Below, one piece after another: positions 6,478 to 57,890 of a stretch of DNA of 64,000 nucleotides (positions are counted from its first letter, which is position 1; each line of letters begins with the position of its first letter). Made by a program: the position numbers and the translations under genes. Origin of the DNA: Bigelowiella natans CCMP2755. Taxonomy: Eukaryota; Protista; Cercozoa. The stretch is from the NCBI GenBank assembly GCA_000320545.1, contig ADNK01000643.1, positions 1-64,000 of the forward strand, in the 5' to 3' direction. A model generated the notes under the pieces. That model saw only the letters and a program-made list of their open reading frames with translations. It searched no databases and had not been told where the DNA came from.

Positions 6478-6529
<52 letters not shown>

Positions 6530-7862: not shown

Positions 7863-8480
7863 ATGTCGATGCAGATTTTCGTAAAGACGCTGGTTGGACG
7901 GACCATCACTCTAGATGTGAAAGCAGGCGACACCATCAACACGGTGAAGCAGAAGATACAAGACAAAGAGGGCATACCTCCTGATCAGCAGCGACTTGTG
8001 TTTGCTGGTAAGGAGCTGCAAGATGGTCGGGCTCTTAGTGACTACGGAGTTGAGAAGGAGAACACATTGCATCTCGTTCTGCGACTACGTGGTGGGTCTG
8101 GAGAAATGCAAATATTCGTAAAGACGCTGGTTGGACGGACCATCACTCTAGATGTGAAAGCAGGCGACACCATCAACACGGTGAAGCAGAAGATACAAGA
8201 CAAAGAGGGCATACCTCCTGATCAGCAGCGACTTGTGTTTGCTGGTAAGGAGCTGCAAGATGGTCGGGCTCTTAGTGACTACGGAGTTGAGAAGGAGAAC
8301 ACATTGCATCTCGTTCTGCGACTACGTGGTGGGTCTGGAGAAATGCAAATATTCGTAAAGACGCTGGTTGGACGGACCATCACTCTAGATGTGAAAGCAG
8401 GCGACACCATCAACACGGTGAAGCAGAAGATACAAGACAATGTTCGAACAACCTCGATCATGTTCATGTGCATTTTGTGA
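7863..8480 (+). CDS. Divergent polyubiquitin: 2 complete 79-aa units plus a third truncated at 8440
   Basis: 237-bp units start at 7869, 8106 and 8343 ([18 protein letters not shown]...LRLRGG) joined by an SGE linker. The third unit breaks after KQKIQD. May be a pseudogene. Confidence 0.9.
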
Positions 8481-9400
8481 GCGCTTTGAGAGCATGTGAA
8501 AGCAAATGAAATTTAGGATGACATTGCAATGCAAGCCAATGACCTGCATCGACACTTTTGCAACCGTGCTCACCATGGACATGTGGGTTTGCATTTGCGT
8601 GCCATTGCCGGTCATTGCGTGCGAACAAGTGAAGTTGCGAATTGGGAAATTTTGACAAAACCCAAAGACACATTTGGTGCTTGTGATTGAACTGAATGCG
8701 CCAAAGTGTGTTTTTTTGTCATTTCCGAAAAAATGGCCATGTTCATTTGGGGAGGCTAGGATGACGCAATGCACAGCACTTTGCACGCATGTTGCATTGC
8801 TGTGCCTGTCATGACTAGATGATTCCATGATGTTGTCTCATCATCATTGAACGCATTTGCAAACGCATGCAAGGTGCCAGCCAGCTAGCTAGCCAGGCTT
8901 CCACATCATGTGCATGTGTTTGCACGCGGCGCCTTCTCTGATTCTTGCTGGGTGCCATCACTCATCTGTCATGCGCAGTCACTGCTGGACTGGTTTGTTG
9001 TGTGTTTGTTCCAACTTTCGTGTTCCGAGCAGGCGACAAAACATCAGCACATCTTGGCTTGCACAGCATCTAAAGATGTGCGGCTCCTGCTGTTCTAGTA
9101 TCAGTCGCCTAGCATGTGCACTTTTTCCATGTTTCTTGTTCAACCCAAGCTGGCAACTACTTGTATTTGCAATGAGCGATGCGATACGATGTGCATGCTA
9201 GCATGTGCACACAATTGTGCGCGGGGGACTCGTGGCCCAATGCTGCCACAGGCTAACCGCCGCATCGGCAACAAAGTACAACTGGCGACCATGGACATAT
9301 GTCAAATGTTGCTAGGTTGTGCACAGGCAATGAGCTAGCAAATGGGAGACCGCTAGACAGGCCAAAAAAACATCGTGTCACATGCTCATACTGGTATAAT
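8441..9400. other. TpA-depleted, CA/TG-rich intergenic island A
   Basis: Only 3 TpA in 8441-8880 (TTAG, CTAG, CTAG). In 8880-9400 the remaining TpAs are mostly CTAG. Confidence 0.9.
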
Positions 9401-25936: not shown

Positions 25937-26309
25937 CTGATATATTCGATGGATCAAACCAATTTGACATGGATGTAGATGACAAGGAGCTTAGCTGAAG
26001 TTGTGCGGAAATACCGACGCTGCCACCTGTGACGGGTTGTCCGCTACATTTCCCTCCTCTTCGTTCATTGGTGGGCTGCCCCCAATGCTAAGAGAGTATC
26101 TGGCCTCTTCGACTCTCAACGGGGATGCGCAGTGAACGGGTTGTGTGCTCGGATGAGGCCCTTCGCCTGGGTTTGGCCAGGCGATTGTCGTGAGTCGAGG
26201 AGTCGAGGTGGCGAGCCCGTGTGTGTTCCTTATCCTCGGTTTTCCCGCCAATAAAATCCTTGTCGCGCTTGAGAAACAGGACGTATTTCTTTGTTTTTTG
26301 TTCCGATAT

Positions 26310-27300
26310 CTCGAGACATTCATCACACTGTCACATCAGAAATGAGGCGTGGGCTGCGTGGCTCCTGCCCTAGTGTGCAATTGCTAGTGTGCCTGCCTGA
26401 CATGCCCGAGCATTTGCAGCTGGTCGCCGATGGGCGCTTTGGCAGTGCAACCACTGTGGCGTTGCAATGTTTCCTGTGCGATCATGGACACAAGGCATTG
26501 CGCACGTCCAAACCCAAAATCAGCCACCACCGCAAAAGAAACTCGACAACCTGGCAAGCATCGATGGGGTTTGGGGATCTTGCAATCTCACTCTGAGAAA
26601 ATGGTGCAGATGTTTTTGAAAAGCAATGTGGGTGGTGCGCGATCAAGCGAACAGCATCGTGAGGAAATTTTTGTGGATTGCAACAACCCGGACTGAAGAT
26701 CATCTAATCATTCTGGCATTGGTTGAGTTCAATGTGCGCTGCGGTCATCGCGAACTTTGAAGATGATGCAAATTGGAAGTCCGTTGTTGCGTGCGATGTG
26801 AGATCTTTTCATTGCAGAGTTTCATGACCATAGTTCCGTGTTTCATCAGAATGTCGTGTTGATTTCCTCATTGCACGCAACAATTTTCCATCATGCAGTG
26901 TGCGTGCATGCCATGTGCGCGCATGCATGCATCCAAGTAGCGGCCATTTTCATGACTCATCAGCTAGCGATGCAGACGACAGAGTGCCAATATGACACAC
27001 TATAGAGACTCCATGAGTGTCTATGCACGTGCATGGACGTCTCTGCACGTGCAAGTGCATCTGTTCCAATGCCGGCCTTGATCCACATGCGTGTGCATGT
27101 GTCCCACGCATCGCATCGCCACGTAGCCACGTGCATGTGTGCCTTTTTTCATGCGCACACGACACATGGTGCTTCATTTCTATTATCACTTCATTGTGAG
27201 TTTGCACCACGCATGCACAGCATGTGTCGTACCTAGCATTTCAGCTAATCAACAAATGATGGCATGGATGTCACATTCTACTCACATGCATGTACTTGCT
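26310..27300. other. TpA-depleted intergenic island B
   Basis: 6 TpA in 26311-26989: CTAG x3, CTAA, ATAG, GTAG. Confidence 0.9.
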
Positions 27301-36322: not shown

Positions 36323-37731
36323 GATTGGTAGTAGTATGGTTAGTCGTTGTAGGATTGGTAGTAGTATTAGTAGTAGGCAGCATCGGTGGAAGTAGCATCA
36401 TGCAGCGGGACAATAGTTGTGCTAGTAATGATGCCTGGTAACGAAGATTTCATCTGCGGACCGGCCTTCAACAACGTCGTTGATCACAGTGTTCTCAGGG
36501 GTCGGTAAGATGGAATCCACGTGCACGAGGCGCAACGAGGAAGCAGCCGAGGATGAGGACGACGACGATGACGCAGAAGGTTGCATCACCGAAAACACTT
36601 CGACGTAACTTCCCCTATAGCGTTAGATTATTTTTTCAATGGAAAGCAAACGATGCAAGAAGGCAGTCTGAGGGGCAAAAAGGTGACATTTAGCTAATTT
36701 TGTCCTGTGGATTCTCAAACTTTTGCACAGTGCTGAGCAACAATCACTTGCATTATGAAACCTTATTTTCAGAAGCAGAGGCTCCCATTGTTTGTTTTTC
36801 TAGGAAATCGGAAATTAAGTCTTACTCGCCCTGGAAGGGGTGCGATACAGCGTAGAGTCTATTGGTGGCATTCGAGTAAAAAATGCCTAAGGAGTGAAAC
36901 AATCACACAGTACATATTAACATACAAGAGAGAGAGAATGTTCCGTTCCTTACATGACAGTTGGCAGTCATGATCATGAGAAGGTCACAGTGACTATGAA
37001 TATCGCCACCCGTTACTTCACACGCTCTTAACGCATGATTGTGCCAATTCGAAAGGTTTGTTATCAGGGACCGTGTGGTTGGAACCTCCGCCCCTCTGGG
37101 AAGTTCTCAATGGTGAGCGGCGTCGGCATCGACATGGAGGTTTCACGAATAGAGTTTAGATCGAGAGCAAAAATGAATCCTTGCTTGGCCGGCCCCTGCG
37201 TCCCTGTGGCGAATACACCCTGCAGGTCGCCTGCAGATCCGAAGGCAATCTGAGATCCGATGGAGGGCCATTTAGGGAATCGTTATGAGTAATTGTTGAG
37301 ATGCGTAGCATAACGTACTGACCCCATTCTTGTACATTGTAAAGTCCTCTGAGTTGGCGAGAATCTCACTTCCCACATTCTCGCAACGGAGCTAATAATT
37401 ATAATGAATGAGGATGGTGATGTTAGCGAGGACGATGAAGAGGAAAGAGGGGGGGATGGAAACAGATGTTTGTGGTGAAATTCACAGTGATGCCAGAAAA
37501 TCCCTGCGCACACTTACATCATATGTCACGTCACCCTTGAACACGCCAAGAAGGAGGGCCACGTAACCCCCCCATGCCAGCGCCGGTCTGTATGAAAGGC
37601 GAACAACAAAAAGTCGAATACATTCATCCTAGTGTTTCATCGGGCGAAATCGGGAAAAGATCTCTCCCACGCTACGAGAGGTAGATCTAAAAGCATTACA
37701 CGAGGATGCAGGTGACGAGGCGGCACAGCAT
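34534..37731 (-). CDS. Paraoxonase/arylesterase-like beta-propeller (PON-like), multi-exon
   Basis: Signal anchor MLCRLVTCIL|TGAGMGGYVALLLGVF; ANSEDF; FIFALDL; FQPHG|IFYSNATNRLYAVSHP; SYVEVF; INDVVEG; FTNDN; MIDNL. These match PON motifs in order. Confidence 0.82.
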
Positions 37732-37795
37732 CGTTCCGAACGAGCTCGGAAGGTGTGAGCAATTTTCAGCCTACGACAGTGTTTTCCCTCTCTAC

Positions 37796-38700
37796 ATCTT
37801 GTCGCAAACACCAATTTGCCTTGGAACCAATGCGCGACTGTGACGGGGGAAAATGCTGACAACCATCAACTCACTGAAGTTGGTTCGAGGCACGTGCTGC
37901 GTTTCGCACACTGCAAGTGTCTTGCAACACTTTGGAAATGCAGTTTCTCATCGTTGCTTCATTGTTTCAATGTTGTGCAATGCTTGGAATGCACGTGAAC
38001 GCACTTCGTTCACAACATCAACGGGTCGACACTTTTTTTCAAGAAAGAAGCAAGCGCCCAGCGTGCCAGCACGGTCGTGCATGCTGGCATGCCAGCACGC
38101 TCACATCATCAGCGCGTGTCTGCAGCTGTCACAAAACCATCCGACAGAAGTGTCTGGACGTGTGCACGTTGCACGTCGCTGCACATCTTTGGGTCAACAT
38201 GCATGCGTGCACGAGACGGATGGCACATCTGTGCATGTGCAATGCACATGCAAATGCATCAAGACGTCTCCAGATCTGTGGGACACATCTCGATGACCTA
38301 GCGATGTGCATGCTGGCATGCTGTCTGTTGTGTGCTCTGTGGACACTGCACTGAGCGCGACATCAACGGCCAGGATGTGCCAGTGTGGATGCTTTCAAAT
38401 GCATGAAACAGCGAAACAGCACGATCTGCTAGCCATGGATGTGGCAGAGACAAACAACAATTTCATGACATGTCCAACGCAATCGCATCCGTCTCACACT
38501 GCACTGCGCAAGCGACATCGGCGACAGGATGTGAATGCTTTCAAATGCATGAATTTGCACAGAAAATGCACAATGGCCGAGACAAACAGATGCATGCAAC
38601 ATGAGCGCTGGCCGCTTCATCAAATCCGTCTCACATACACTGCATGTCTAGACTGTCTAGCTGTGTTTCTGTCATTACTAGGTTATTAATATGCTTCTAG
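37796..38700. other. TpA-depleted intergenic island D with internal ~150-bp tandem duplication
   Basis: 2 TpA in 37796-38635, both CTAG (38299, 38430). CAGGATGTG...GCTTTCAAATGCATGAA...GAGACAAACA...ATCCGTCTCACA occurs twice (38371, 38525). Confidence 0.92.
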
Positions 38701-38793: not shown

Positions 38794-41691
38794 CTACTCT
38801 TTTGTAGTTTCCATCAGAAAGTCAAAAAGCGCAGACTCATGAAGCCGCCGCCGGCCCTTCTTTTTTGCGTACAAAAGAAGCCTCTTCCACAGCCACGAGG
38901 AGCTCTTGCCAGCTTTCAAAATAGCCTCCACTACTTGTTCGAGACCCTCGGTGCGATTGTCGCCAAAAGTGTGGTACAGCACCTTCTTCTTCGCCTCGGA
39001 GCAACCTATCCACTGCAGCATGGCCTGGAAAAATAGCCGAGTAAGTTGTTGCTTCTTCACGAACAGCTCTATCTATACTTGACGTGATCCGGAGAAAATC
39101 TGCCTGTTTCTCTTTACCGAAGGGTAAGAAGAAAGAAAAAAGGGCTGCGGCTGAAAGATTTTTGCATAATTTGTCCAGTTTAGCGTGCTGATAGCATAGA
39201 GAAACATCTTAGTTCATACGACGTATTTGTACCTTGAGTGGAATATCCCCCCCAAAGGCGCCACAGCCCCAATTTCCAGTTGCAAACGTATCGAAGGCGT
39301 ACTGTTTCGGAGTCATGACGGCAGCGTCTTTCGACTCCTCTATTGTGCTATCTATGGATTGCTTACCTAGGAAGGATAAACGAGATTTAATAATGACAAG
39401 CTTTGACGCTCTTAATCAAAGATAGCAGTCAAAATGAGTCAAATGCGACGAAAGCCGGCTTTTCAGATGGGCTATGTCCATGGTTCGATTCTTGTCAGCA
39501 AAGGACCTGCATCCGGGTCGTAAGCCGTGAGTTTTTCCCCAGCGCAAGTGAGCTCGTTGGGGACATCAACAGCGACGAAGGTCTTCACAATCTCGCGCAT
39601 CATAATCTCCTTGCTGTATTGATTAAACTGACGTGATCAGCCAAGGTATCAGTGTCTCCCAGAGTATATCATCAAAGAAGTTGAAAACCAAAAGCTACGG
39701 CACAGAGTCCGCATCCATAATTGCGCTAAGATGATTTTTACATAAATTGCAAGTGTAAAGGCTCATCCATTGTCTGACCCTCCACCAGTCCAAATTTTTG
39801 GTCAAAAAAGTTATTCTCTCATCCTTCATCTTCCCCTTCACAAGTACCGAAAAAGCAACGATTGCATCAAACGCGATGATGACGTTTGATATGCGACGTT
39901 TGGGATCGAGTGGTGTCTTATCCTTGAAGTCTCCAGCATACTTGAACCCTCGTGCATAACCAGTGTGCTTTGAGAAACGCTCTGCGCCAACTGATGAGTA
40001 ATGAAGGCGAAAGGTTGACACCCAGCGTATATCAGATCAAACTTGCTGCATTGACTGGATGCGTCTCGTTTTTAACTCATTTCTCAAACCCCCCCGAGCT
40101 TTCTTGTACAATCGGCTGCACTCATTGCATTACACACGCACACGCACACGCACACGCACACGCACACACCAACCTAAGGTGATGCTTTCGTTAGCCAGCA
40201 TGACTTCACAGAAGAGCATTGAGCACAGACACTCTGGTTTTTCGAGAAACAGTATCTCTTCTTGGACGCAACCCGCTTGCAGCACACCGCCCCCGATCCA
40301 CTCATTCGCGAAATCTGCCTGTAGACATCTACATCGCGCACGCATTGCGAGTACGTTACGACAACAAGGGGTAAATACAGAGGTAAAGGAAAGGGGGGGG
40401 AGAGAGAAAGAGAATGAAGGAGTTGACGCAAATCATAAATGGGTGCTCCTGTCGTTCTGGTTGCTGCTTCTTCTTCTTCTTCTTCTTCTTCTTCTTCTTC
40501 TTTTCCAAGCGACATGGTCGTATCTAATCGCGCATACCCATCAGCGTCTTCGATCATGTGACCGACAGGAAGCACTTTGAATTCCGTGAGCTTAGTGTCT
40601 TCTTGCGGCTCAAACTCCTCTGCATTCTTCAGGACGAGGCGATGAAAACTCACGTTGCGCTCGCTGATACCCCCAACTGCGAGACGGAAAAAGTAGTGCA
40701 GGAGGCACTTCGAATGCTCCTCACAACGAGAGAAAACGCCAGCGAACGCAAGCTCCGGACAGTTCCGTCCTAACACATTTACGAGCTATTTAGAGCTACC
40801 ACGCAACGCAGGACAGCCATATGGTTTCAATCTAGTGGTAGACAGCAAGTCACTTTCTAGGAAATGATGGCCATCGCCTTCAAGGTGATGCAGAGGGAAG
40901 ACAAGGGGGGGGTTAGTACCTGATGGAAGCAGGTCAAAGAATGCACAAGCCAGGATCACCGCGCATTGGTGAGCTGTGAGCGTCAATTTAGCTGGATACC
41001 CTTGCCGCAATAATGGAATGCTCTTCGCGTCAGCAAACTGCACAGGGAGTTGCAGGATTAGCTCTTGAACAAACGGCAATATCTTCGAGAAAAATTTCTT
41101 TCCTTCCTCCCCTAGATACGGGATGGGTAAAGAGGGAGAGAGAGAGAGAGAGAGAGAGAAAGGTGAAGGCGTCTCGTCAGCCCATTTCTAAGTTCTCTGG
41201 TTTTCGCCATCATTTCCATCTACTACCCATCGAGTCAACCGCCTTGCAGAGGGCCTTGTAACGATATGTCTCTTCTTTGTGTGGGTTGAGATCACTGGCT
41301 AGTTTCTCAAAGTCATCCCATTTCTCAACCTAAATGAAAGATGAGCTATGGAATTTCGACAGCGACCTGGAAGCCACAGTTCATTTTCATTCGCACGCAA
41401 AATGGCCTCTGGTGAGCGTCTTTACCTTGGTTTCGGAGAGAATTTTCGAAATCCTCACCCACATCTGCCCGTCGGAGTGCGGGAGGTCAATCATGTGTTT
41501 CGATGAATCTGAACAGTTCAGTGCAATTGGATTTAGAAAGGTGTGCATGCATCACAAATGCTGTCTACATTTCGACCGTTTTTGCATCTTCGAGAGCGTT
41601 TCTCACCCCCTTGTTCACTCTCCCCTTCCATCGCCTTCTCTTGATCCTTCTTCCTCTTGGAGGGGGCACTAGGTCCGTCTTTCTCTTCCAT
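38794..41691 (-). CDS. PARG: Poly(ADP-ribose) glycohydrolase
   Basis: QADFANEWIGGGVLQAGCVQEEILF catalytic motif; GAERFSKHTGYA; IIAFDA; ATGNWGCGAFGGD; MLQWIGCS. Confidence 0.93.
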
Positions 41692-41824
41692 CTCTCCGGT
41701 TTCTTCGGTTTCGGGTGAGCGTTCTCAGGCGTTTTTTCGCTACGACATCTGAATATCCTCGTAGCATCTAGTCGTAAATCAAGGACGATTTCATCGGCAG
41801 AAAAATTCCGTGAAATTTCCTAAT

Positions 41825-42893
41825 GCAGGCTTGATTTCCGAGAGAAGCAGCCTCTGCTTCTGAAAAGAAAGCTTGATGCATTTGAGTGGAGGTCTTGCGC
41901 CGTCAGTGTTTTGCCGCTAGTGTCATTGCAACACAATGACTAAATCATGCCAATTTGAAAAACCAGCTAGTTGATTTGCTAGTCACAGTCCTCACTGAAG
42001 CCAGTTCGAGGCACTGCATTTCGAACACTGCAAATGTCTTGCAACATTTTGGAAATGCAGTTCATCATCATTGTTCATTGTTCATTGTTCATTCAATGTT
42101 TGGTTCGTGCCATTTTGCACGATCCCCGCTAGCTTGCTAGTCAGTCCTCACTGAAGCCAGTTCGAGGCACTGCATTTCGCACTTTGCAAGTGTCACGTCA
42201 CACTTTGGAGATGTTGTTTTTCATCATTGTTCATGTTGTTCATTGTTCACAATGCAAGTGATTTTCTCAGCACTGCCACAAAGTGTGAGAATCCATGGGA
42301 CGAAAATTTTGCCCCGCAGACTGCCTTCTTGCATCGTTTGCTTTCCATCGAAACAGTGATCCAACGCTGTGGGAAGTCGTGTCGAAGTGTTTTCGGATGA
42401 GATGTGCAACCTTCTGCATCATCGTCGACGTCCTCACCCTCCAGCCCTCGGCTTCCTCGTGGAGCTTGCCTTCGGCAGGCGGTCTTTTTGCTGGAGACAC
42501 CCGTGTGCATGTGAGTGACAATCTGGACAATGACAATGATGACCACACTTCCAAAACGTTGTGAGACGTTCGCAGTCAGCAGTGCACGAAACGCAGTGCC
42601 TCGAGAACAATGAGACAATGATGAAAATTTGTCTGCACTTCCAAAGTGTGACAAGACACTTGCAGTGTGCGAAGTGCAGTGCCTCGAACTGGCTTCAGTG
42701 AGGAGTGAAAACTGTCGAACCAGCTTTGGTGAGGCCTCACCAGCCCTGTGAGGCTGGAAGGGGTGCGACAGCGCAGAGTCCATTGGTGGCATTCGAGTGG
42801 AAAACCCTGAGGAGTGAAACTCATCAACCACACTGCAGCAGTTGCACGTTCGGACATTGGCCATCCAGAGAGAGAGAGACAGAGAGCTGGAGC

Positions 42894-42936
<43 letters not shown>

Positions 42937-43020
42937 TTCTGTTCCTGCTTGCACAAGCATGACAGCTCTGGCAATCATGATCATGAGAAGCATGTCACAG
43001 TGACTGCATGAACATCGCCA
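41825..43020. pseudogene. Rearranged, hypermutated duplicate of PON-like gene fragments (exons and introns)
   Basis: 41825-41865 and 42247-42460 are inverted copies of ~36820-36530; 42754-43020 is a direct copy of 36831-37010. Confidence 0.88.
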
Positions 43021-43420
43021 CCAATCGAGCAACAATGTCCAGATGTGATGGGGAAAGTTTGACAATGATGCAAAGTGGCGATTTTGCATGTTCATTCCTG
43101 CTGCATGATTCAGGCAATTGCTGCATGCAATTCGCTTGCTCATCATGCGTTCGTGTCGCATGAGCTTTTCCACGTGTGCAAGGCGAGAATTGCACGGCGC
43201 GCATGCTGGCATGCTAGAATGATCATGGCAATCCACCCAAATAACCAGTCTTGCAGTGCGCACAACCGAATTGATAATAGACATAGTGACATTGTCATGG
43301 ATGCTGCAAGGTGCTATAATTGCTACTCGTAGACATTGTCCATTGTGTGTGCTGTGTGTGTAGCTAGTGTGATTAGGTGCTGCTAGCGTCCATGACATCG
43401 ATCACAAAAATGCCAATCAA
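41870..43420. other. TpA-depleted intergenic island E (strongest)
   Basis: No TpA between 42139 and 43214. In 41881-42140 there are only CTAG x5 and CTAA x1. Confidence 0.95.
41988..42710. repeat. ~110-150-bp unit CTCACTGAAGCCAGTTCGAGGCACTGC..., in tandem and inverted copies
   Basis: Plus copies at ~41988 and ~42141; minus copies at ~42705-42610 and ~42605-42520; another plus copy at ~37870. Confidence 0.85.
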
Positions 43421-43673
43421 AAGATGTTAGAAAGGTGCACACATTTGCATGATGCAACGCTCCATGCTAGCATGGTATTGTGTAACTTTCGCAAAATCAT
43501 GTCTAATTTTGGAGTTTTACCGTCACCCCTACCATAACGGCGTTGTTTAATTCATTACTGATACACATATTTTCTGACGTTATTTTCACACCATCACTAT
43601 TAAGATTCACAACGCAAATTCTATTATTCACAGAATTGCACGAATTTAATAAATTGCTGGATATCTTGAGTCC

Positions 43674-46087: not shown

Positions 46088-49000
46088 TTATTTCAGGGAC
46101 TTCACCTTTTTGCTGCTACTGCTGCTTCGTACGCTCTTGAGCTGATGTTCGAGGCCTTGTATCTCGCCCTGCACCCTCTCTATCTCGGCACGCGTCTCCG
46201 CAATCGAGAGCATCTTGATGTCGGCAGGGACCATCGCCGGAGTGATTAGGTCAACGTCCTCGCTCCCCACAGCGACCGACACGTCCTTCCTCTTCTTGTA
46301 AGATGGCGGTTTCTTCTGCTTATTCTTCTTCTTCTTCGAGGAGGAGTAGGCGAGGGATCTTGAGATGGCGGCATCGTCACCATCGTCAGTGTTGTCGCTG
46401 TCGTCTTCATCAAACGTCGACTCGACGACGAGCTTGGCGGGGTACCACCCGTTTTGGGGGCCGAGAATCTGATTGCCGACGATTCTCACCTGCGCAAGGC
46501 CTGCATCGCGCCACAACCCATACACGCCCCCCCCTCCTCCTCCTCCTGCTGCGGTGCCCCCAGGAGTAGTATCAAGCCGTGTCCACTGATAGTTTCCAGG
46601 CTTGAACAGCAGCGTCTGCCCCGAGGCGTCCATGTAGCCTTTGAGGACGATCCCATTGGCGAAAGTCACGGTAATGTCCGGGTGGTACCTATGTTTCTTC
46701 GCGAGGGCGCTGCTCTTCTGGCGCTGGGCTGCGGTGGGCCGAGGAGTTGTGAAGGCCGCCGGGGAAGAGATGTTGCGGATCATCTTGGGGATCTTCGGCT
46801 TAGGCTTCGGCTTCGGTGGCGACTGCTGCGGCACGGGGATGTCTGCCCCCCCCCATTCTTTGCGCATGGCAATCACCTTCGCTGGGTACCACCCGTTGAG
46901 CGGTCCCTTGATCTCTCGCTGGCCGATGGTGACGGGCACTTTGACTGCATCGTACCACTGCCCCTTGATGTCCTCGCCCCATGTGGCGGAGCTGGAGGTC
47001 CCTTGGCAGAGGATGAGCCCACCCGTTTCTATAGTGCGGTGCCACTTGTAGCCCCCCTTCCACAGAATCTGGTGGCCCTCGTCCACCACCGATCCTTCCA
47101 GTCTCACCTTGTTGGCGAAGACCGCAACAATGTCAACGCCGGGAAGCAAAGCGCCCTGAGCCCCCTTCTTCTTTTTCTTCTTCTTGCCCCCGAAGGCGCC
47201 CCCTCCTCCGCCCCTCTTGCCGCCCTTGTTCTTCTTGGAGCTCGAAGGCGGTTTGGGGTTGAGCGGGTCGCTATGCCTGACCCCGAGCACCAGCCCAGGA
47301 TACTGACTTCCCTCCCCCAGGATGTCTTTCGAGTCTGAGAGCTGGATTTCCTTGCCATTCTCATCGCTCCAGACGCCGAAGGGGCTTGCAACGCTGTCGT
47401 CGTCGTCTAACGGCGTTTTCCTCCGCCAGCGTTCCCCGCCCGGCGTCCAGAGGAGCCCAGTCCCGAACACGTCGAGCGTGCCCACCATCTTCTTCCCGTC
47501 GGCGAAGCGGGCGGAGATGCGGGTGACACGCGCACCGGTGAGTTGGAGGACCTCGGCGGGGTACCAGGGTTCCAACCCGTAGGTGGGGCCCTTGATCGTC
47601 GCATGGCCGACCTCCACCTTGCTCCCGCCAGCATCGAACCATTCGCCAAGCAGCCCCGAGGCGGCGGAGGCTGTCTTCCGCTCCCATTTGTAGGCGATGC
47701 CCTTGCCCTTCCATTTGAGCGTCTTGCCCTCCTTTTCCAGCACCCCGTGCATCTGCTTCCCATTGGCGAAACGGGCTACCACCCCCCACACACACACCGC
47801 CGCCGACGACGACGACGACGTCGTCGTTTTATTTGCTGTTCCCGCATCAGCTACTTCTGCTGGTTTTTGGCCAACAACAGTGGTGTTGGTGGTGGTGGTA
47901 GCAGTTGTAGTAGTACTACTACTACTACTAGTAGTAGTAGTAGTAGCGGTAGCAGCAGCAGGCGGGGTGACTACGGTGTTGTTGATATCCGAAGAAGTAG
48001 TAGTAGTCGCAGTAGCAGCAGCAGCTGTAGTAAGGGGATTGCTGGCGGTGGCACCAACACCGCTGCTAGCGGAAGGGGAGGAAGTTTTGCTCTCCTTTTC
48101 GTCGGTAGTACTAGTAGAAGTAGGAGGATTTGCAGCAACTGCCGATGCTGTTGTTGCCATCGCCGCCGCCGCTGCCGTCTTCTTCGTCTCCTCATTATCA
48201 TCATCATCGTCCCCCTTCTCTAGCATTGGCATCTCCTCCTCTTCCTCCTCCTCCTCCTCCTTCTCTTCCGTGTTTGGGCGTCGAGATACCGTTACGCCCT
48301 CCTCAGTTTCTAGGGCAGGAAGCTGATTCTTGTCGTCATCTTCGACTTTCATGTCGCGCTGCGCTGAGGAGGAGGAATGTGCCTGCTGCTCTTGCTGCTG
48401 CTGCTGCTGCTGGCCATTGAGGGCCCGTTCTCCTGCAGCACACATTATGATAATGAGAATCTCTCGTGATTATCTAAAGACAAATAGCTAATATAATACC
48501 ACACGCCCCACGCCCTGTAAACAACGACATACACAAGTGGCTTTCCATATTCGCCCGACAGCGTGCTCTCTCCCTCTCCCCCTCCCTCCCTCTGCCGACA
48601 CCCTGTCACACACCGAGGTAGAAAGTGTGCACTATCAACTACGGGATTACTTTACTACCTTCCTGTGGTTGTTCTGTGGATCTTGGGTGCTTTTCACCTG
48701 ACTGTCGGGGCTGTTTACCACCAACAGTAGGAGTCTCCCGCTGCTGTAGCTGCGTTCCCTCCGATGATGCTGGTGTTTTACCGCCCGTTGTAGCTCTCTT
48801 TTCGTCGCTACTGTCTGCAGTAGCATTAGCAGCAGTGGCAGAAGACTCGGACAATGATTTCGATAGTTCTTTATTGGAGGAGTCGGACGATGATCTCGGT
48901 AGCTCTTCATTGCGCGAGTCGGATAATGATCCCGGTAGTTCTTTTTTGCGGGAGTCGGACAATGATTTCGGTGGCTCTTTATCGACCATGCTACTACTAC

Positions 49001-53767: not shown

Positions 53768-55163
53768 TCATTCGTGCAAGGCCACCTCGACGACAGATAG
53801 AGGGTCCCTCAAATCATACTGAGTGACATTGCCTGTGATCCCAGCAGCGCTGAAGAGATCTTTGAAATCGGCGAGGCTCCTCTCGCGCGCGCCCATCGGG
53901 CATGAAGCAAGCATGTTAATGTCCATGAGAGCTTTGAACTGTTCCAAAGATGAACGGCTAGGATGAGAGCCAAGTATGAAGTCTGCATTTGTAAGGACAC
54001 TTCCGGGGCGTGAAACGGCCAAGACGTTTTTCAGAATCTTAATTGCAGAGGCGTCGTCCCTACCAGATTTCACGAACGAATGAATCAGATGAATAAAATA
54101 GTTAATGTGATAGTATTTACCAGTCGTGAAGAATGAACTTCAAAAAGAACACATCGCATTCCCCAAAGGTTTTCGGAAGCGGCTCGAAGAACGACCCACC
54201 GACTACCTCGACTCGATCTCCAACGTCAGTTGTAGCGAGATAAGCATTTGCATTTGCTACGACACTCGTTTGATCAAATAATTTTCCTTTTGCGCCCGGA
54301 TAGTGTTGCAGAAAGTTCGCCACAACCGTCCCTTGACCTCCCCCAATGTCGCAAAAAGTAACGTTTTCATTTGGAGGAGCATAGTCAGCGAGAATAGCTC
54401 CGATCATAGAGGGCGCGACAGCTAAAATGCGGATAGTAACAAAATGTTCAGATATGAAACAACTAAGGTGGGAAGTAAATGGTAGATGTAGTGAATGAAC
54501 ATTACCCTCCATTGCCATATCGAACTGCTTTTCTTTCTCTGGATGCTTGGCGTGATATGTCCAAACTCCTTCCCCGAAGGCTTCCATAAATCCTCCTTTC
54601 TCCCCCGTCTTGATGCTCTTTGTCCCCGCTGCCCTCCAAGCCTCGGCTGTCTCTTCGTTAATCATCAATGTGAAAGCAACAGCATTTCCGGGAGTATCGG
54701 TGCGGAGAAATTTCCCTGCGCTGGAGAGCACAAATAGCTTCTTGCCATTAGAAGCGGTAGCTGGTGAATTCAAAAGCCCAAGTTGCATTGCCGCGGCCAT
54801 ATACCGGCATGTAACGAATTCGCTCAGGTCGAGATCCTGTGCGACTTTCGCACAAGTGACGCCAGCAACTCCTTCAGCGTCCATGGCGTCCGGGATACCA
54901 TTCTTAACGAGAGCATATTGAACCTCAGATTGCCAGTAAGCTGTCGCTTTCATTCGAACAAGCACATCTGGTGGGGTCAAGGCATCGGCAGCCATTCGCA
55001 GCATGTCCGAGAGGGGCCCTAGAGTGAGAAGAATTGGCCAGGGAGGGATCAATTTCGTGTAACTCGATGCTGGAACTGCAGGAGGGGAGACGCCCTTTGG
55101 CGATAGAGCCAGAAGAGCACCGATGGCAATGGCCAAGAGCAACGATATGCAGGAGCCGCACAT
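53768..55163 (-). CDS. Class I SAM O-methyltransferase (COMT/ASMT-like, Methyltransf_2) with N-terminal hydrophobic leader
   Basis: Dimerisation helix region YWQSEVQYALVKNGIPDAM; DIGGGQG; FDQTSVV; GGSFFE; FFLKFILHDW; DINML; ERSLADFKDLFSAAG. Confidence 0.9.
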
Positions 55164-56600: not shown

Positions 56601-56649
56601 AAGGATCACAGGCAAAATAGTCTAGAGCTAGCTAGCTTATCTGTGCGAT

Positions 56650-57890
56650 GTTGCCGTGCATGTGGCAACCCATGCACCTGCATGTCTGCATCATTTGAAG
56701 ATTCATCTAGATTGTAACCAACACAACAATGACACGAGTACATGATTTGCATCACCCTGCATCTTTCATCTGCTATTGTGCTCCATGATGAAACAAAGCA
56801 GACATTTGTTCATTCGATCAGTTTTTCGCCTTCTGTCATCCTGTCACACGTACCCACAATGACCCATTATCCTTGAGGTGGAGCAGAAACGCATTGCGCA
56901 TTCTGTCGCCTGCACGATGTGTAATCGACAGTTGACACGTGTAGTTCTAGTGCTCAATTGCTAGCGTAGGAGAACACATGTACCCACACAAGTCCGTCAA
57001 ACCCGGTGACGACGGGGTTGTGAACAGTGCAGCGCTTTGAAGCAGCAGGCAGTTGCAGTTAGTCAAAGAAAAGTCATCAGAACTTGTCCGATGGCCAAAC
57101 CTGAAAAAATGACCGAAATGTTGACCAAAATGTCCATTTCCAAGGCCTCAAAGTGTGAAAATTCACACCCGTTGTGTAGCGGATGCACGCTGCGCGTTTG
57201 TTCTCTGCCACATTTTGAATGCTTTTGCGTGTGCGTTTGACCAAATGTGACATGCACGAAAAATTTCAAAGAAATGCGAGCAAATCCAATGTCCATTGCA
57301 TCACATGACGCGCTTGGTCGCGCGCAAAAGCTTCCAAATGCACATTCTGGCGATTCGTTACAGGTTTGACGGACTTGTGCATGCACACCACATGCACCTG
57401 AAAAGCACACATGCTCTGTTCGTTCACATCCATGTGTCCACACATGCACCCATGCCAGCAGACACGCGATGCATCACACCTAGACACGTGCACAGCATGC
57501 GCGTGCCAGATGCTGTGCGACATTGCCATCGATCGACGTGCCGCCGCATGAGTCAGGGTTGCAATGAGAGCATCGTTCCTGCAGCCATCATTCCAGCAGC
57601 GTGTGCATGAATGAATTGCGAAATGATGTGTGCAGCGCAGCTGCCAAAAAAGTTGTCGTCCGCGCAGTGATCGATGGCACGGTCGATGCTAGCGATGCCC
57701 CACAAGTGACGGAGAACAAATTGAGAAGAAAAGAAGAAGAAGTGTGCGAATGAAGCTTAGAGGGACTCGCATTGCGGAACTCAGCCGCCACCACAACCAC
57801 ACAGCACCCAAGCACGCACCGACCTCGATCTCAGCTCGGCGAACGGCCCTTTGCACGTCGCCAAGGGAAGGTTTGATTTTCTAGCGTCTC
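56650..57890. other. TpA-depleted intergenic island F
   Basis: 6 TpA in 57001-57880, five of them TAG (CTAG x2, TTAG x2, GTAG) plus one TTAC. Confidence 0.88.

Follow-up and report, generated by a model that had tools for sequence, protein, structure and literature searches.

How does more than one kilobase of DNA come to lack a single TpA dinucleotide while A and T remain abundant in it? This question is raised by a 64,000-nt stretch of the Bigelowiella natans CCMP2755 genome (assembly GCA_000320545.1, contig ADNK01000643.1, positions 1 to 64,000 of the forward strand; hereafter, the window), in which a sequence-only reading had noticed that no TpA occurs between the CTAG motifs at 42137 and 43214. 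This run lies within a longer TpA-depleted segment, referred to here as island 4, which is one of five such islands in the window. We interpret island 4, with a probability of roughly 80%, as the footprint, at saturation, of an A:T to G:C hypermutation of genomic DNA that is specific for TpA and targeted locally. Island 4 belongs to the TpA hypermutation already described in B. natans (Mettrop et al., 2026; bioRxiv 10.64898/2026.01.13.699255) and is not a new phenomenon; what it adds are extra constraints on that process and a high density of short islands.

Absence of TpA from the Run and Comparison With Null Models

The bounding CTAG motifs (42137–42140 and 43214–43217) leave a TA-to-TA gap of 1,077 nt, from 42138 to 43215, which confirms the initial observation. 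The 1,076-nt run contains 271 A and 261 T residues, from which 66 TAs are expected (approximately 53 at the window-wide TA frequency), in agreement with the earlier statement that composition alone would give dozens. The observed/expected (o/e) ratio in the run was 0 for TA, 1.69 for CA, and 1.64 for TG, and the ratios of AA, AT, and TT were normal (0.91–1.18). The gain was symmetric, with 107 CA and 116 TG, and the tetramers TGCA and CATG, which had also been described as enriched, were in excess by 5.3- and 3.6-fold, respectively. For dinucleotides other than TA, the largest gap in the window was at most 357 nt.

The null models were Markov chains (orders 1, 2, 3, and 5) with parameters estimated from the window. 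The longest TA-free runs that they produced averaged 160–185 nt and never exceeded 270 nt, and the analytic chance of one 1,077-nt gap in the window was approximately 2e-20. TA-free gaps reached 223 nt at most in the six coding stretches that were identified, and low TA was not accompanied there by an excess of CA+TG. Approximately 1 kb of unique TA-free DNA remained after internal repeats and a (GA)n tract were collapsed. The background TA o/e of the window was 0.71, which is ordinary and does not resemble that of repeat-induced point mutation (RIP). Runs of this length are thus neither expected under a local null nor found in the six coding stretches, and the signal stands after both the sliding dinucleotide scan, which covered the window, and the Markov test.

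Five TpA-Depleted Islands in the Window

Once CTAG and CTAA are set aside, the TA-free tract proves larger than first noted and spans 41822–43241 (island 4). A sliding scan of the window returned five islands of 0.6–1.4 kb (Table 1), a frequency of approximately one per 13 kb. Taken together, they contain 23 TAs compared with approximately 270 expected from composition, with a CA+TG o/e of 1.65–1.91 and a G + C fraction of 0.45–0.52. All five are located outside the genes identified in the window. Sequence similarity was detected only between islands 3 and 4, which share a few blocks; islands 1, 2, and 5 match no other island.

The edges of the islands are sharp, to within a few nucleotides, which appears to be a new observation. 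At the left edge of island 1, homology to a series of ubiquitin-like repeats stops at 8440, which is also where the TA-free tract sets in, and on the host side the TA at 8431 is intact. TA is normal between the 5′ end of a PTEN-like transcript and island 2, and a 52-nt (TA)n microsatellite persists approximately 750 nt from that island. Long (TA)n microsatellites of 32–52 nt, this one included, were found untouched at 6484, 10619, 25563, and 35616, indicating that TA loss is very local.

Comparison of Island 4 With an Unedited Paralog

Copies of nearby sequence make up approximately a third of island 4. The counterpart of these blocks (A, B, and C) is located beyond the PARG gene, at a distance of approximately 5 kb, and retains 16 TAs compared with none in the island 4 copy. 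Eleven of the paralog TAs could be aligned, and nine of them stand opposite CA (five) or TG (four) in the island. Among the mismatches of the three blocks, C or G in the island faced T or A in the paralog 23 times and the reverse was seen five times (p = 0.0009). The two copies have diverged by 13–23%, including approximately 12 transversions, which indicates that ordinary mutation has long been active, yet the island has kept no TA. This comparison suggests that TA is actively removed or excluded in island 4. The removal appears to track position and not sequence, since related DNA 5 kb away was left alone. Exact-pattern scans of metagenome and viral contigs returned no further copies with which the changes could be polarized.

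Agreement With Published Hypermutation in B. natans

A mutation-accumulation study of B. natans demonstrated de novo hypermutation of TpA to TpG or CpA (Mettrop et al., 2026). Of 302 nuclear point mutations, 231 affected a 186-kb integrated giant virus and a 25-kb virophage, and almost all of these were A to G or T to C changes at TpA (Mettrop et al., 2026). Genome-wide, Rho_TA and Rho_CA+TG of 1-kb windows were negatively correlated, and a subgroup combined low Rho_TA with high Rho_CA+TG; the 5% cut-offs were 0.43 and 1.52, respectively, and the analysis was confined to clusters of at least three consecutive 1-kb windows (n = 124) (Mettrop et al., 2026). The authors proposed that an ADAT2-like adenine deaminase acts in defense against foreign DNA, and the B. 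natans ADAT2-like candidate has residues associated with DNA editing; an ADAT2/ADAT3-like pair is listed as Bn78255 and Bn77986 (Mettrop et al., 2026).

When the same cut-offs (Rho_TA at most 0.43 and Rho_CA+TG at least 1.52) were applied to the window, the bin 42001–43000 passed both, with a Rho_TA of 0.03 and a Rho_CA+TG of 1.61. The bins with islands 1, 3, and 5 had a Rho_TA of 0.14–0.35. Four of the 64 bins passed both cut-offs, and no run of three qualifying bins, as the published cluster definition requires, was present. The islands of the window are thus “singletons” of the kind that the cluster analysis set aside.

The published numbers also allow a quantitative comparison. With 210 TpA events, approximately 5,980 callable TpAs, and 3,132 line-generations (Mettrop et al., 2026), each TpA mutates at a rate of 1.1e-5 per generation, corresponding to a TA half-life of approximately 6e4 generations, and seventy TAs were calculated to drop below 0.5 in approximately 4.4e5 generations. 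Given the baseline GC to AT rate of 3.4e-10 (Mettrop et al., 2026), the calculated equilibrium expectation for the tract, with its 223 CA+TG sites, is 0.007 TA, and a count of zero is therefore what continued activity predicts.

The sequence-only reading had concluded that mutation ran to saturation, and this is supported by the loss of TA alone, the symmetric CA/TG gain, the 23:5 bias relative to the paralog, and the published de novo rate. Its further suggestion of repeated rounds or a processive enzyme holds in its first part: according to the rate arithmetic, repeated rounds are sufficient without a processive enzyme. The de novo events fall singly, scattered over 186 kb (Mettrop et al., 2026). 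Island 4 resembles the hypermutable regions of B. natans in its TpA-only loss, its gain of CpA and TpG on both strands, and the local rise in G + C content. In the active virus and virophage regions of the preprint, TAs still number in the thousands (with a Rho_TA of 0.45 or even a TA-rich sequence), whereas the island 4 tract (1.1–1.4 kb) is saturated, intergenic, not recognizably viral, and partly a copy of nearby sequence.

Exemption of CTAG and Sequence Context of the Surviving Sites

The density in islands relative to that outside was 0.95-fold for CTAG, 0.21-fold for CTAA/TTAG, and 0–0.09-fold for the eight other NTAN classes. CTAG accounted for 11 of the 23 TAs surviving in the islands, compared with 5% in the background (binomial p = 5.5e-9). 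CTAG is fully exempt and CTAA/TTAG partly so, which appears to be new. As TA is palindromic, a G:C pair following it gives the A of one strand a 3′ G and places a C two bases upstream of the A of the other, so that CTAG is the only context unfavorable to both strands.

The published de novo list points in the same direction. In our hand count of the events in Table S2 of the preprint, the edited A was followed on its 3′ side by A in 67 events, T in 67, C in 52, and G in 20. TAG was used at 0.44-fold its share in the window background (p = 5e-6). TAG sites are thus the least mutated in the de novo list and the most resistant in the islands, and the de novo deficit provides independent, partial support for TAG resistance in the islands. 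Among the events counted on the reference strand, TAG was found three times and CTA 17 times (p = 0.003), and the other three context pairs were balanced. The text of the preprint contains no occurrence of “CTAG,” “context,” or “flanking,” and it does not describe an exemption of CTAG, sharp island edges, or a hairpin core of the kind presented below.

CTAG is also unevenly distributed. Its density per kilobase was 4.0 in island cores, 7.7 within 300 nt of the edges, and 2.4 elsewhere, with clusters at island borders (e.g., 56623–56633, 8886–8890, 38649–38698, and 42130–42138). The hexamer GCTAGC made up 12 of 41 island CTAGs and 13 of 138 elsewhere (Fisher p = 0.003). The enrichment would reflect build-up in the sole uneditable TA state after spontaneous C to T changes in CCAG/CTGG.

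Two further context patterns were considered and rejected. A preference for TAC (C at +1) was suggested by GTGC, ATGC, and TTGC, which were 2.3- to 2.9-fold enriched, but the GTGC/GCAC excess of approximately 63 is far larger than the approximately 11 GTAC sites; the preference was rejected because neighboring TAs confound it (TATA to TGCA or CATG), and the de novo list is also without a C preference. In-phase (CA|TG)n runs, regarded as possible relics of (TA)n, were 6.5-fold denser in islands, but their count of 16 stayed within the range of a first-order Markov control (10.6; maximum, 20).

Anatomy of Island 4

Approximately 430 nt of island 4 consists of four copies of one TA-free unit (U), two in tandem and two inverted, and approximately 80 nt is (GA)n (Table 1). 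When folded as RNA, the long inverted repeat is predicted to form a hairpin with a stem of approximately 100 bp (−270.6 kcal/mol; z = −12.3). The structure was compared with miniature inverted-repeat transposable elements and terminal inverted repeats: the inverted arms measure 69–75 nt and the U unit occurs five times in the window, at two neighboring loci only, and no target-site duplication was seen at the outer ends of the inverted arms.

The 12-nt palindrome CATGCTAGCATG occurs at 9194, 38080, 38309, 43202, 43210, and 43463, with two exact copies and four with one mismatch, mostly CATGCTGGCATG. All are located in or beside islands 1, 3, and 4, compared with 0.29 expected by chance. The palindrome may be a putative binding site or, alternatively, a by-product of island composition and of interconversion between CTAG and CTGG. 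To the right of island 4, positions 43242–43500 have a CA+TG o/e of 1.5–1.9 and a normal TA density, and this flank may once have belonged to the island and have since ceased to be a target.

Table 1. Features of island 4 and of the surrounding window (an empty strand cell denotes an unstranded feature).
Feature	Positions	Strand	Description
TpA-free run	42139–43214		1,076 nt, zero TA
Island 4	41822–43241		1,420 nt; TAs are CTAG at 41918, 41968, 41980, 42130, 42138, and 43215 and CTAA at 41941
U repeat, copy 1	41976–42098	+	Unit of approximately 100–120 nt, begins CTCACTGAAGCCAGTTCGAGGCACTGCA
U repeat, copy 2	42134–42254	+	Tandem with copy 1; 156-nt spacing, 84–85% identity
Two inverted U copies	42524–42708	−	42605–42708 strong, 42524–42604 weaker
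Long inverted repeat	42141–42708		Arms 42141–42209 and 42640–42708, 91% complementary
Block A	42246–42441	−	Copy of 36549–36759, 77% identity; inverted relative to B and C; in hairpin loop
Block B	42754–42820	+	Copy of 36831–36900, 87% identity
(GA)n microsatellite	42858–42933		Inside island 4
Block C	42923–43022	+	Copy of 36927–37010, 77% identity
Right-edge motif	43201–43221		GCATGCTGGCATGC then CATGCTAGAATG, variants of palindrome CATGCTAGCATG
Spurious ORF (open reading frame)	42247–43398	−	383 aa; its only Tyr is encoded beyond the TA-free part
Unedited paralog of blocks A, B, and C	36549–37010		Normal TA density; outside island 3
Island 1	8439–9095		TAs are four CTAG, one TTAG, and one CTAA; begins where the third ubiquitin-like repeat breaks off
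Island 2	26308–26938		Starts approximately 120 nt upstream of the PTEN-like transcript 5′ end (26190)
Island 3	37794–38636		TAs are CTAG at 38299 and 38430 only; fifth U copy at 37870–37987
Island 5	56982–57881		No identified gene; approximately 1.8 kb past the 5′ end of a minus-strand O-methyltransferase ORF (54117–55163)
PARG (poly-ADP-ribose glycohydrolase) gene exons	39695–41079	−	Between islands 3 and 4; island 4 on the 5′ side

Proposed Mechanism and Alternative Explanations

In the mechanism that we propose, every TpA in a sharply bounded intergenic patch of approximately 1.4 kb would be converted to TpG when one strand is attacked or to CpA when the other is. Ongoing activity would clear new TpAs approximately 30,000 times faster than spontaneous C to T changes make them, and TpA inside CTAG, and in part that in CTAA/TTAG, would escape. 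The affected patch would consist of tandem and inverted copies of the approximately 100-nt unit, forming a long hairpin, together with rearranged copies of neighboring sequence. We infer that the activity reported in the preprint also made island 4 and that the enzyme is an adenine deaminase, for which the ADAT2-like protein named there is a candidate. Targeting would depend on chromatin or on a repeat- or hairpin-RNA-derived mark and not on foreignness as such.

Several observations weigh against this interpretation. The CA+TG excess over the five islands (approximately 330) is larger than the TA deficit relative to average host DNA (approximately 200), which requires either a more TA-rich precursor or long-term flux through TA. 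Hypermutation at island 4 is known from its footprint and not from de novo events, and the direction from TA to CA/TG is inferred rather than polarized. No CA-versus-TG double mismatches, a sign of editing after duplication, were seen between the hairpin arms or the U copies, so the arms must have been duplicated or homogenized after TA loss. In addition, the preprint ties hypermutation to viral and foreign DNA, and the island ORFs have no viral or transposon homology in Pfam, PHROGs, or protein databases. Saturating mutation could have erased the coding homology of an island of foreign origin. The target, however, need not be recognizably foreign, and the occurrence of the signature in short, non-viral intergenic patches appears to be a new point.

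The same outcome would follow if the T of TpA were attacked in place of the A, for example by JBP/TET-type oxidation to 5-hydroxymethyluracil or 5-formyluracil, which mispair with G. TpA is self-complementary, so that T to C on one strand equals A to G on the other, in the island and in the published list alike. TAG resistance, moreover, would not be expected of either known adenosine deaminase: ADAR prefers a 3′ G and a 5′ U, and ADAT2/3 natively edits A34-G35 tRNAs. On the other hand, U33 precedes A34 in every ADAT/TadA substrate, which fits the T-A rule, and 5-hydroxymethyluracil has little mutagenic effect when it pairs with A. B. natans possesses the ADAT2-like candidate with its DNA-editing residues, and the literature surveyed documents no thymine-modifying enzyme or modified base for this species, and we regard attack on T as unlikely. 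Purifying selection against TpA is a different possibility, in which the islands would be functional as upstream regulatory DNA, nuclease-resistant transcripts, or sequence proof against transposon insertion, with transitions as the commonest escape. It would accord with the position of all five islands outside identified genes, including those of island 2 just upstream of a transcript and island 4 on the 5′ side of PARG, with the recurrence of CATGCTAGCATG and GCTAGC in and beside islands, and with the baseline transition/transversion ratio of 7 (Mettrop et al., 2026), which would favor escape to CA/TG. Nevertheless, selection would have to act on approximately 66 independent sites per kilobase of non-coding, poorly conserved DNA, in islands of which three are unrelated in sequence to any other, and the island copy of the paralogous blocks still has zero TA at 13–23% divergence. 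Selection also gives no reason for the sparing of CTAG alone, TA is normal between the PTEN-like transcript and island 2, and a measured TA-specific hypermutation explains the pattern quantitatively. A selective origin is thus considered decidedly improbable.

The polarity could also be the reverse, the TA-free units and (GA)n having simply been duplicated and the paralog having gained TA through RIP-like mutation or deamination of methylated C (CpA to TpA). The repeat content of island 4 (four copies of a TA-free unit and the (GA)n tract) and hairpin arms that were already TA-free when duplicated are compatible with this explanation, as are the status of C to T as the commonest spontaneous change and the few island–paralog differences that are CpG versus TpG/CpA. 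However, the approximately 1 kb of unique sequence is TA-free as well (p approximately 1e-20), four other islands carry the same signature, three of them unrelated in sequence, and none of the approximately 12 transversions relative to the paralog made a lasting TA. Deamination in the paralog does not explain zero TA in the island, and a background TA o/e of 0.71 is not RIP-like; we consider reversed polarity very improbable. A sequencing or assembly artifact can be given almost no weight: the PTEN-like gene elsewhere in the window is 100% identical over 1.7 kb to an independent cDNA contig of a JGI-hosted transcriptome, the signature recurs five times with specific context rules, and the same genome-wide signature was obtained from an independent Illumina re-sequencing analysis. 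A mirror-image form of RIP in a fungus, promoter motifs like the apicomplexan TGCATGCA, and an avoidance either of stop codons or of TA-target transposons were also considered and were dropped given the literature and the context data.

Likeness to Known Mutation and Editing Systems

The islands share with fungal RIP a dinucleotide-specific and saturating change in discrete segments, here with duplicated and inverted DNA, that leaves diagnostic indices. The direction, however, is opposite. RIP changes CpA to TpA and lowers G + C content, whereas in the islands TpA is changed to CpA or TpG and G + C content rises; consistent with this, the TpA/ApT index of the run is 0, and (CpA+TpG)/(ApC+GpT) is 223/129 = 1.73, the opposite of RIP. 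In contrast to RIP, which normally hits both copies of a duplication, one of two paralogs was mutated here, and no premeiotic stage is known in this case.

ADAR hyper-editing, ADAT2/3, and TadA, together with the TadA-derived DNA base editors, convert A to inosine that is read as G and follow a 5′ U/T neighbor rule. Moreover, a transcript of the island 4 core would fold into a hairpin whose stem measures approximately 100 bp, like the double-stranded RNA that ADAR hyper-edits. Unlike the products of ADAR and ADAT2/3, the island change is fixed in genomic DNA and a 3′ G is disfavored: the islands follow the 5′ T rule of ADAR and depart from its 3′ G preference, as TAG sites are the most resistant. 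APOBEC3 and AID likewise produce context-specific, clustered, one-directional transitions in targeted DNA, which are interpreted as defense; unlike the islands, they are characterized by C to U changes in TC/CC or WRC contexts of single-stranded DNA, in viral replication intermediates or immunoglobulin genes rather than in resident intergenic DNA mutated to saturation. CpG islands are comparable in that they are kilobase-scale, are defined by a single dinucleotide, and lie between or upstream of genes, but they retain a dinucleotide lost elsewhere, whereas the TA-free islands lose one that is retained elsewhere.

Implications

TpA-specific hypermutation of nuclear DNA has been documented so far in a single 2026 preprint, and island 4 would represent its end state. 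The constraints that it places on the mechanism are the full sparing of CTAG and partial sparing of TAG sites, the sharp edges, and a saturated, non-viral, hairpin-centered target beside an untouched paralog. These bear on which enzyme is involved, on whether RNA or chromatin guides it to its targets, and on whether the process serves defense or shapes the genome more generally.

As a tentative extension, in which we have less than even confidence, the islands could be standing editing domains that extend far beyond the 124 published clusters, with targeting that is positional or driven by repeats or hairpin RNA and an activity that reads a 4-bp context. If so, the density of approximately one island per 13 kb in the window would make thousands possible genome-wide, and the contrast between the saturated copy in island 4 and the untouched paralog would be explained. 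The immunity of CTAG would stem either from rejection of a 5′ C and a 3′ G by the enzyme or from a protective modification. CTAG and GCTAGC would accumulate as the only absorbing TA state, and the process would be a RIP-like, mirror-image form of genome shaping with its own sequence grammar.

The 383-aa Reading Frame and Homology of Island DNA

The 383-aa ORF that overlaps the run had been called spurious, a product of the loss of TAA and TAG, and our analysis agrees. In the six frames of the TpA-free region, TAA and TAG are absent and TGA is the sole stop codon, with 31 occurrences on the plus strand and 24 on the minus strand. Since only TGA stops are left, the ORF stays open, and Tyr cannot be encoded within the tract. 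Neither a word-indexed search nor a full HMMER scan, which covered 1.84 billion representative proteins, returned a homolog of the predicted product, none of 11 island ORFs matched Pfam or PHROGs, and the island motifs had no match in the viral or metagenome contigs scanned. TA-free tracts spawn long orphan ORFs through the absence of TAA and TAG, and these should not become gene calls.

Other Features of the Window

No RNA family was found in the window by Rfam at gathering thresholds, and apart from the PTEN-like protein, none of 13 window ORFs had an identical copy in the protein collections searched. The G + C content, the AC and GA microsatellites, and the frequency of islands in the window are in keeping with B. 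natans. The ubiquitin-like tandem gene at the left edge of island 1 (7869–8438, plus strand) consists of 79-aa repeats that SGE linkers join; after two complete repeats, the third breaks off at residue 32, and its remainder was not found anywhere in the window. Two TA-poor stretches, 41100–41820 and 46750–47500, have a TA o/e of 0.3–0.4 without a CA+TG excess, the second being a GC-rich coding ORF. They represent a different kind of TA depletion and provide a useful negative control. A 785-aa low-complexity ORF (46088–48445, minus strand) contains repeated WYPAK-type modules and has no Pfam match of its own; its sole database relative is a transcript of the chlorarachniophyte Gymnochlora sp. 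CCMP2014, which shares 43% identity and has a bromodomain Pfam match.

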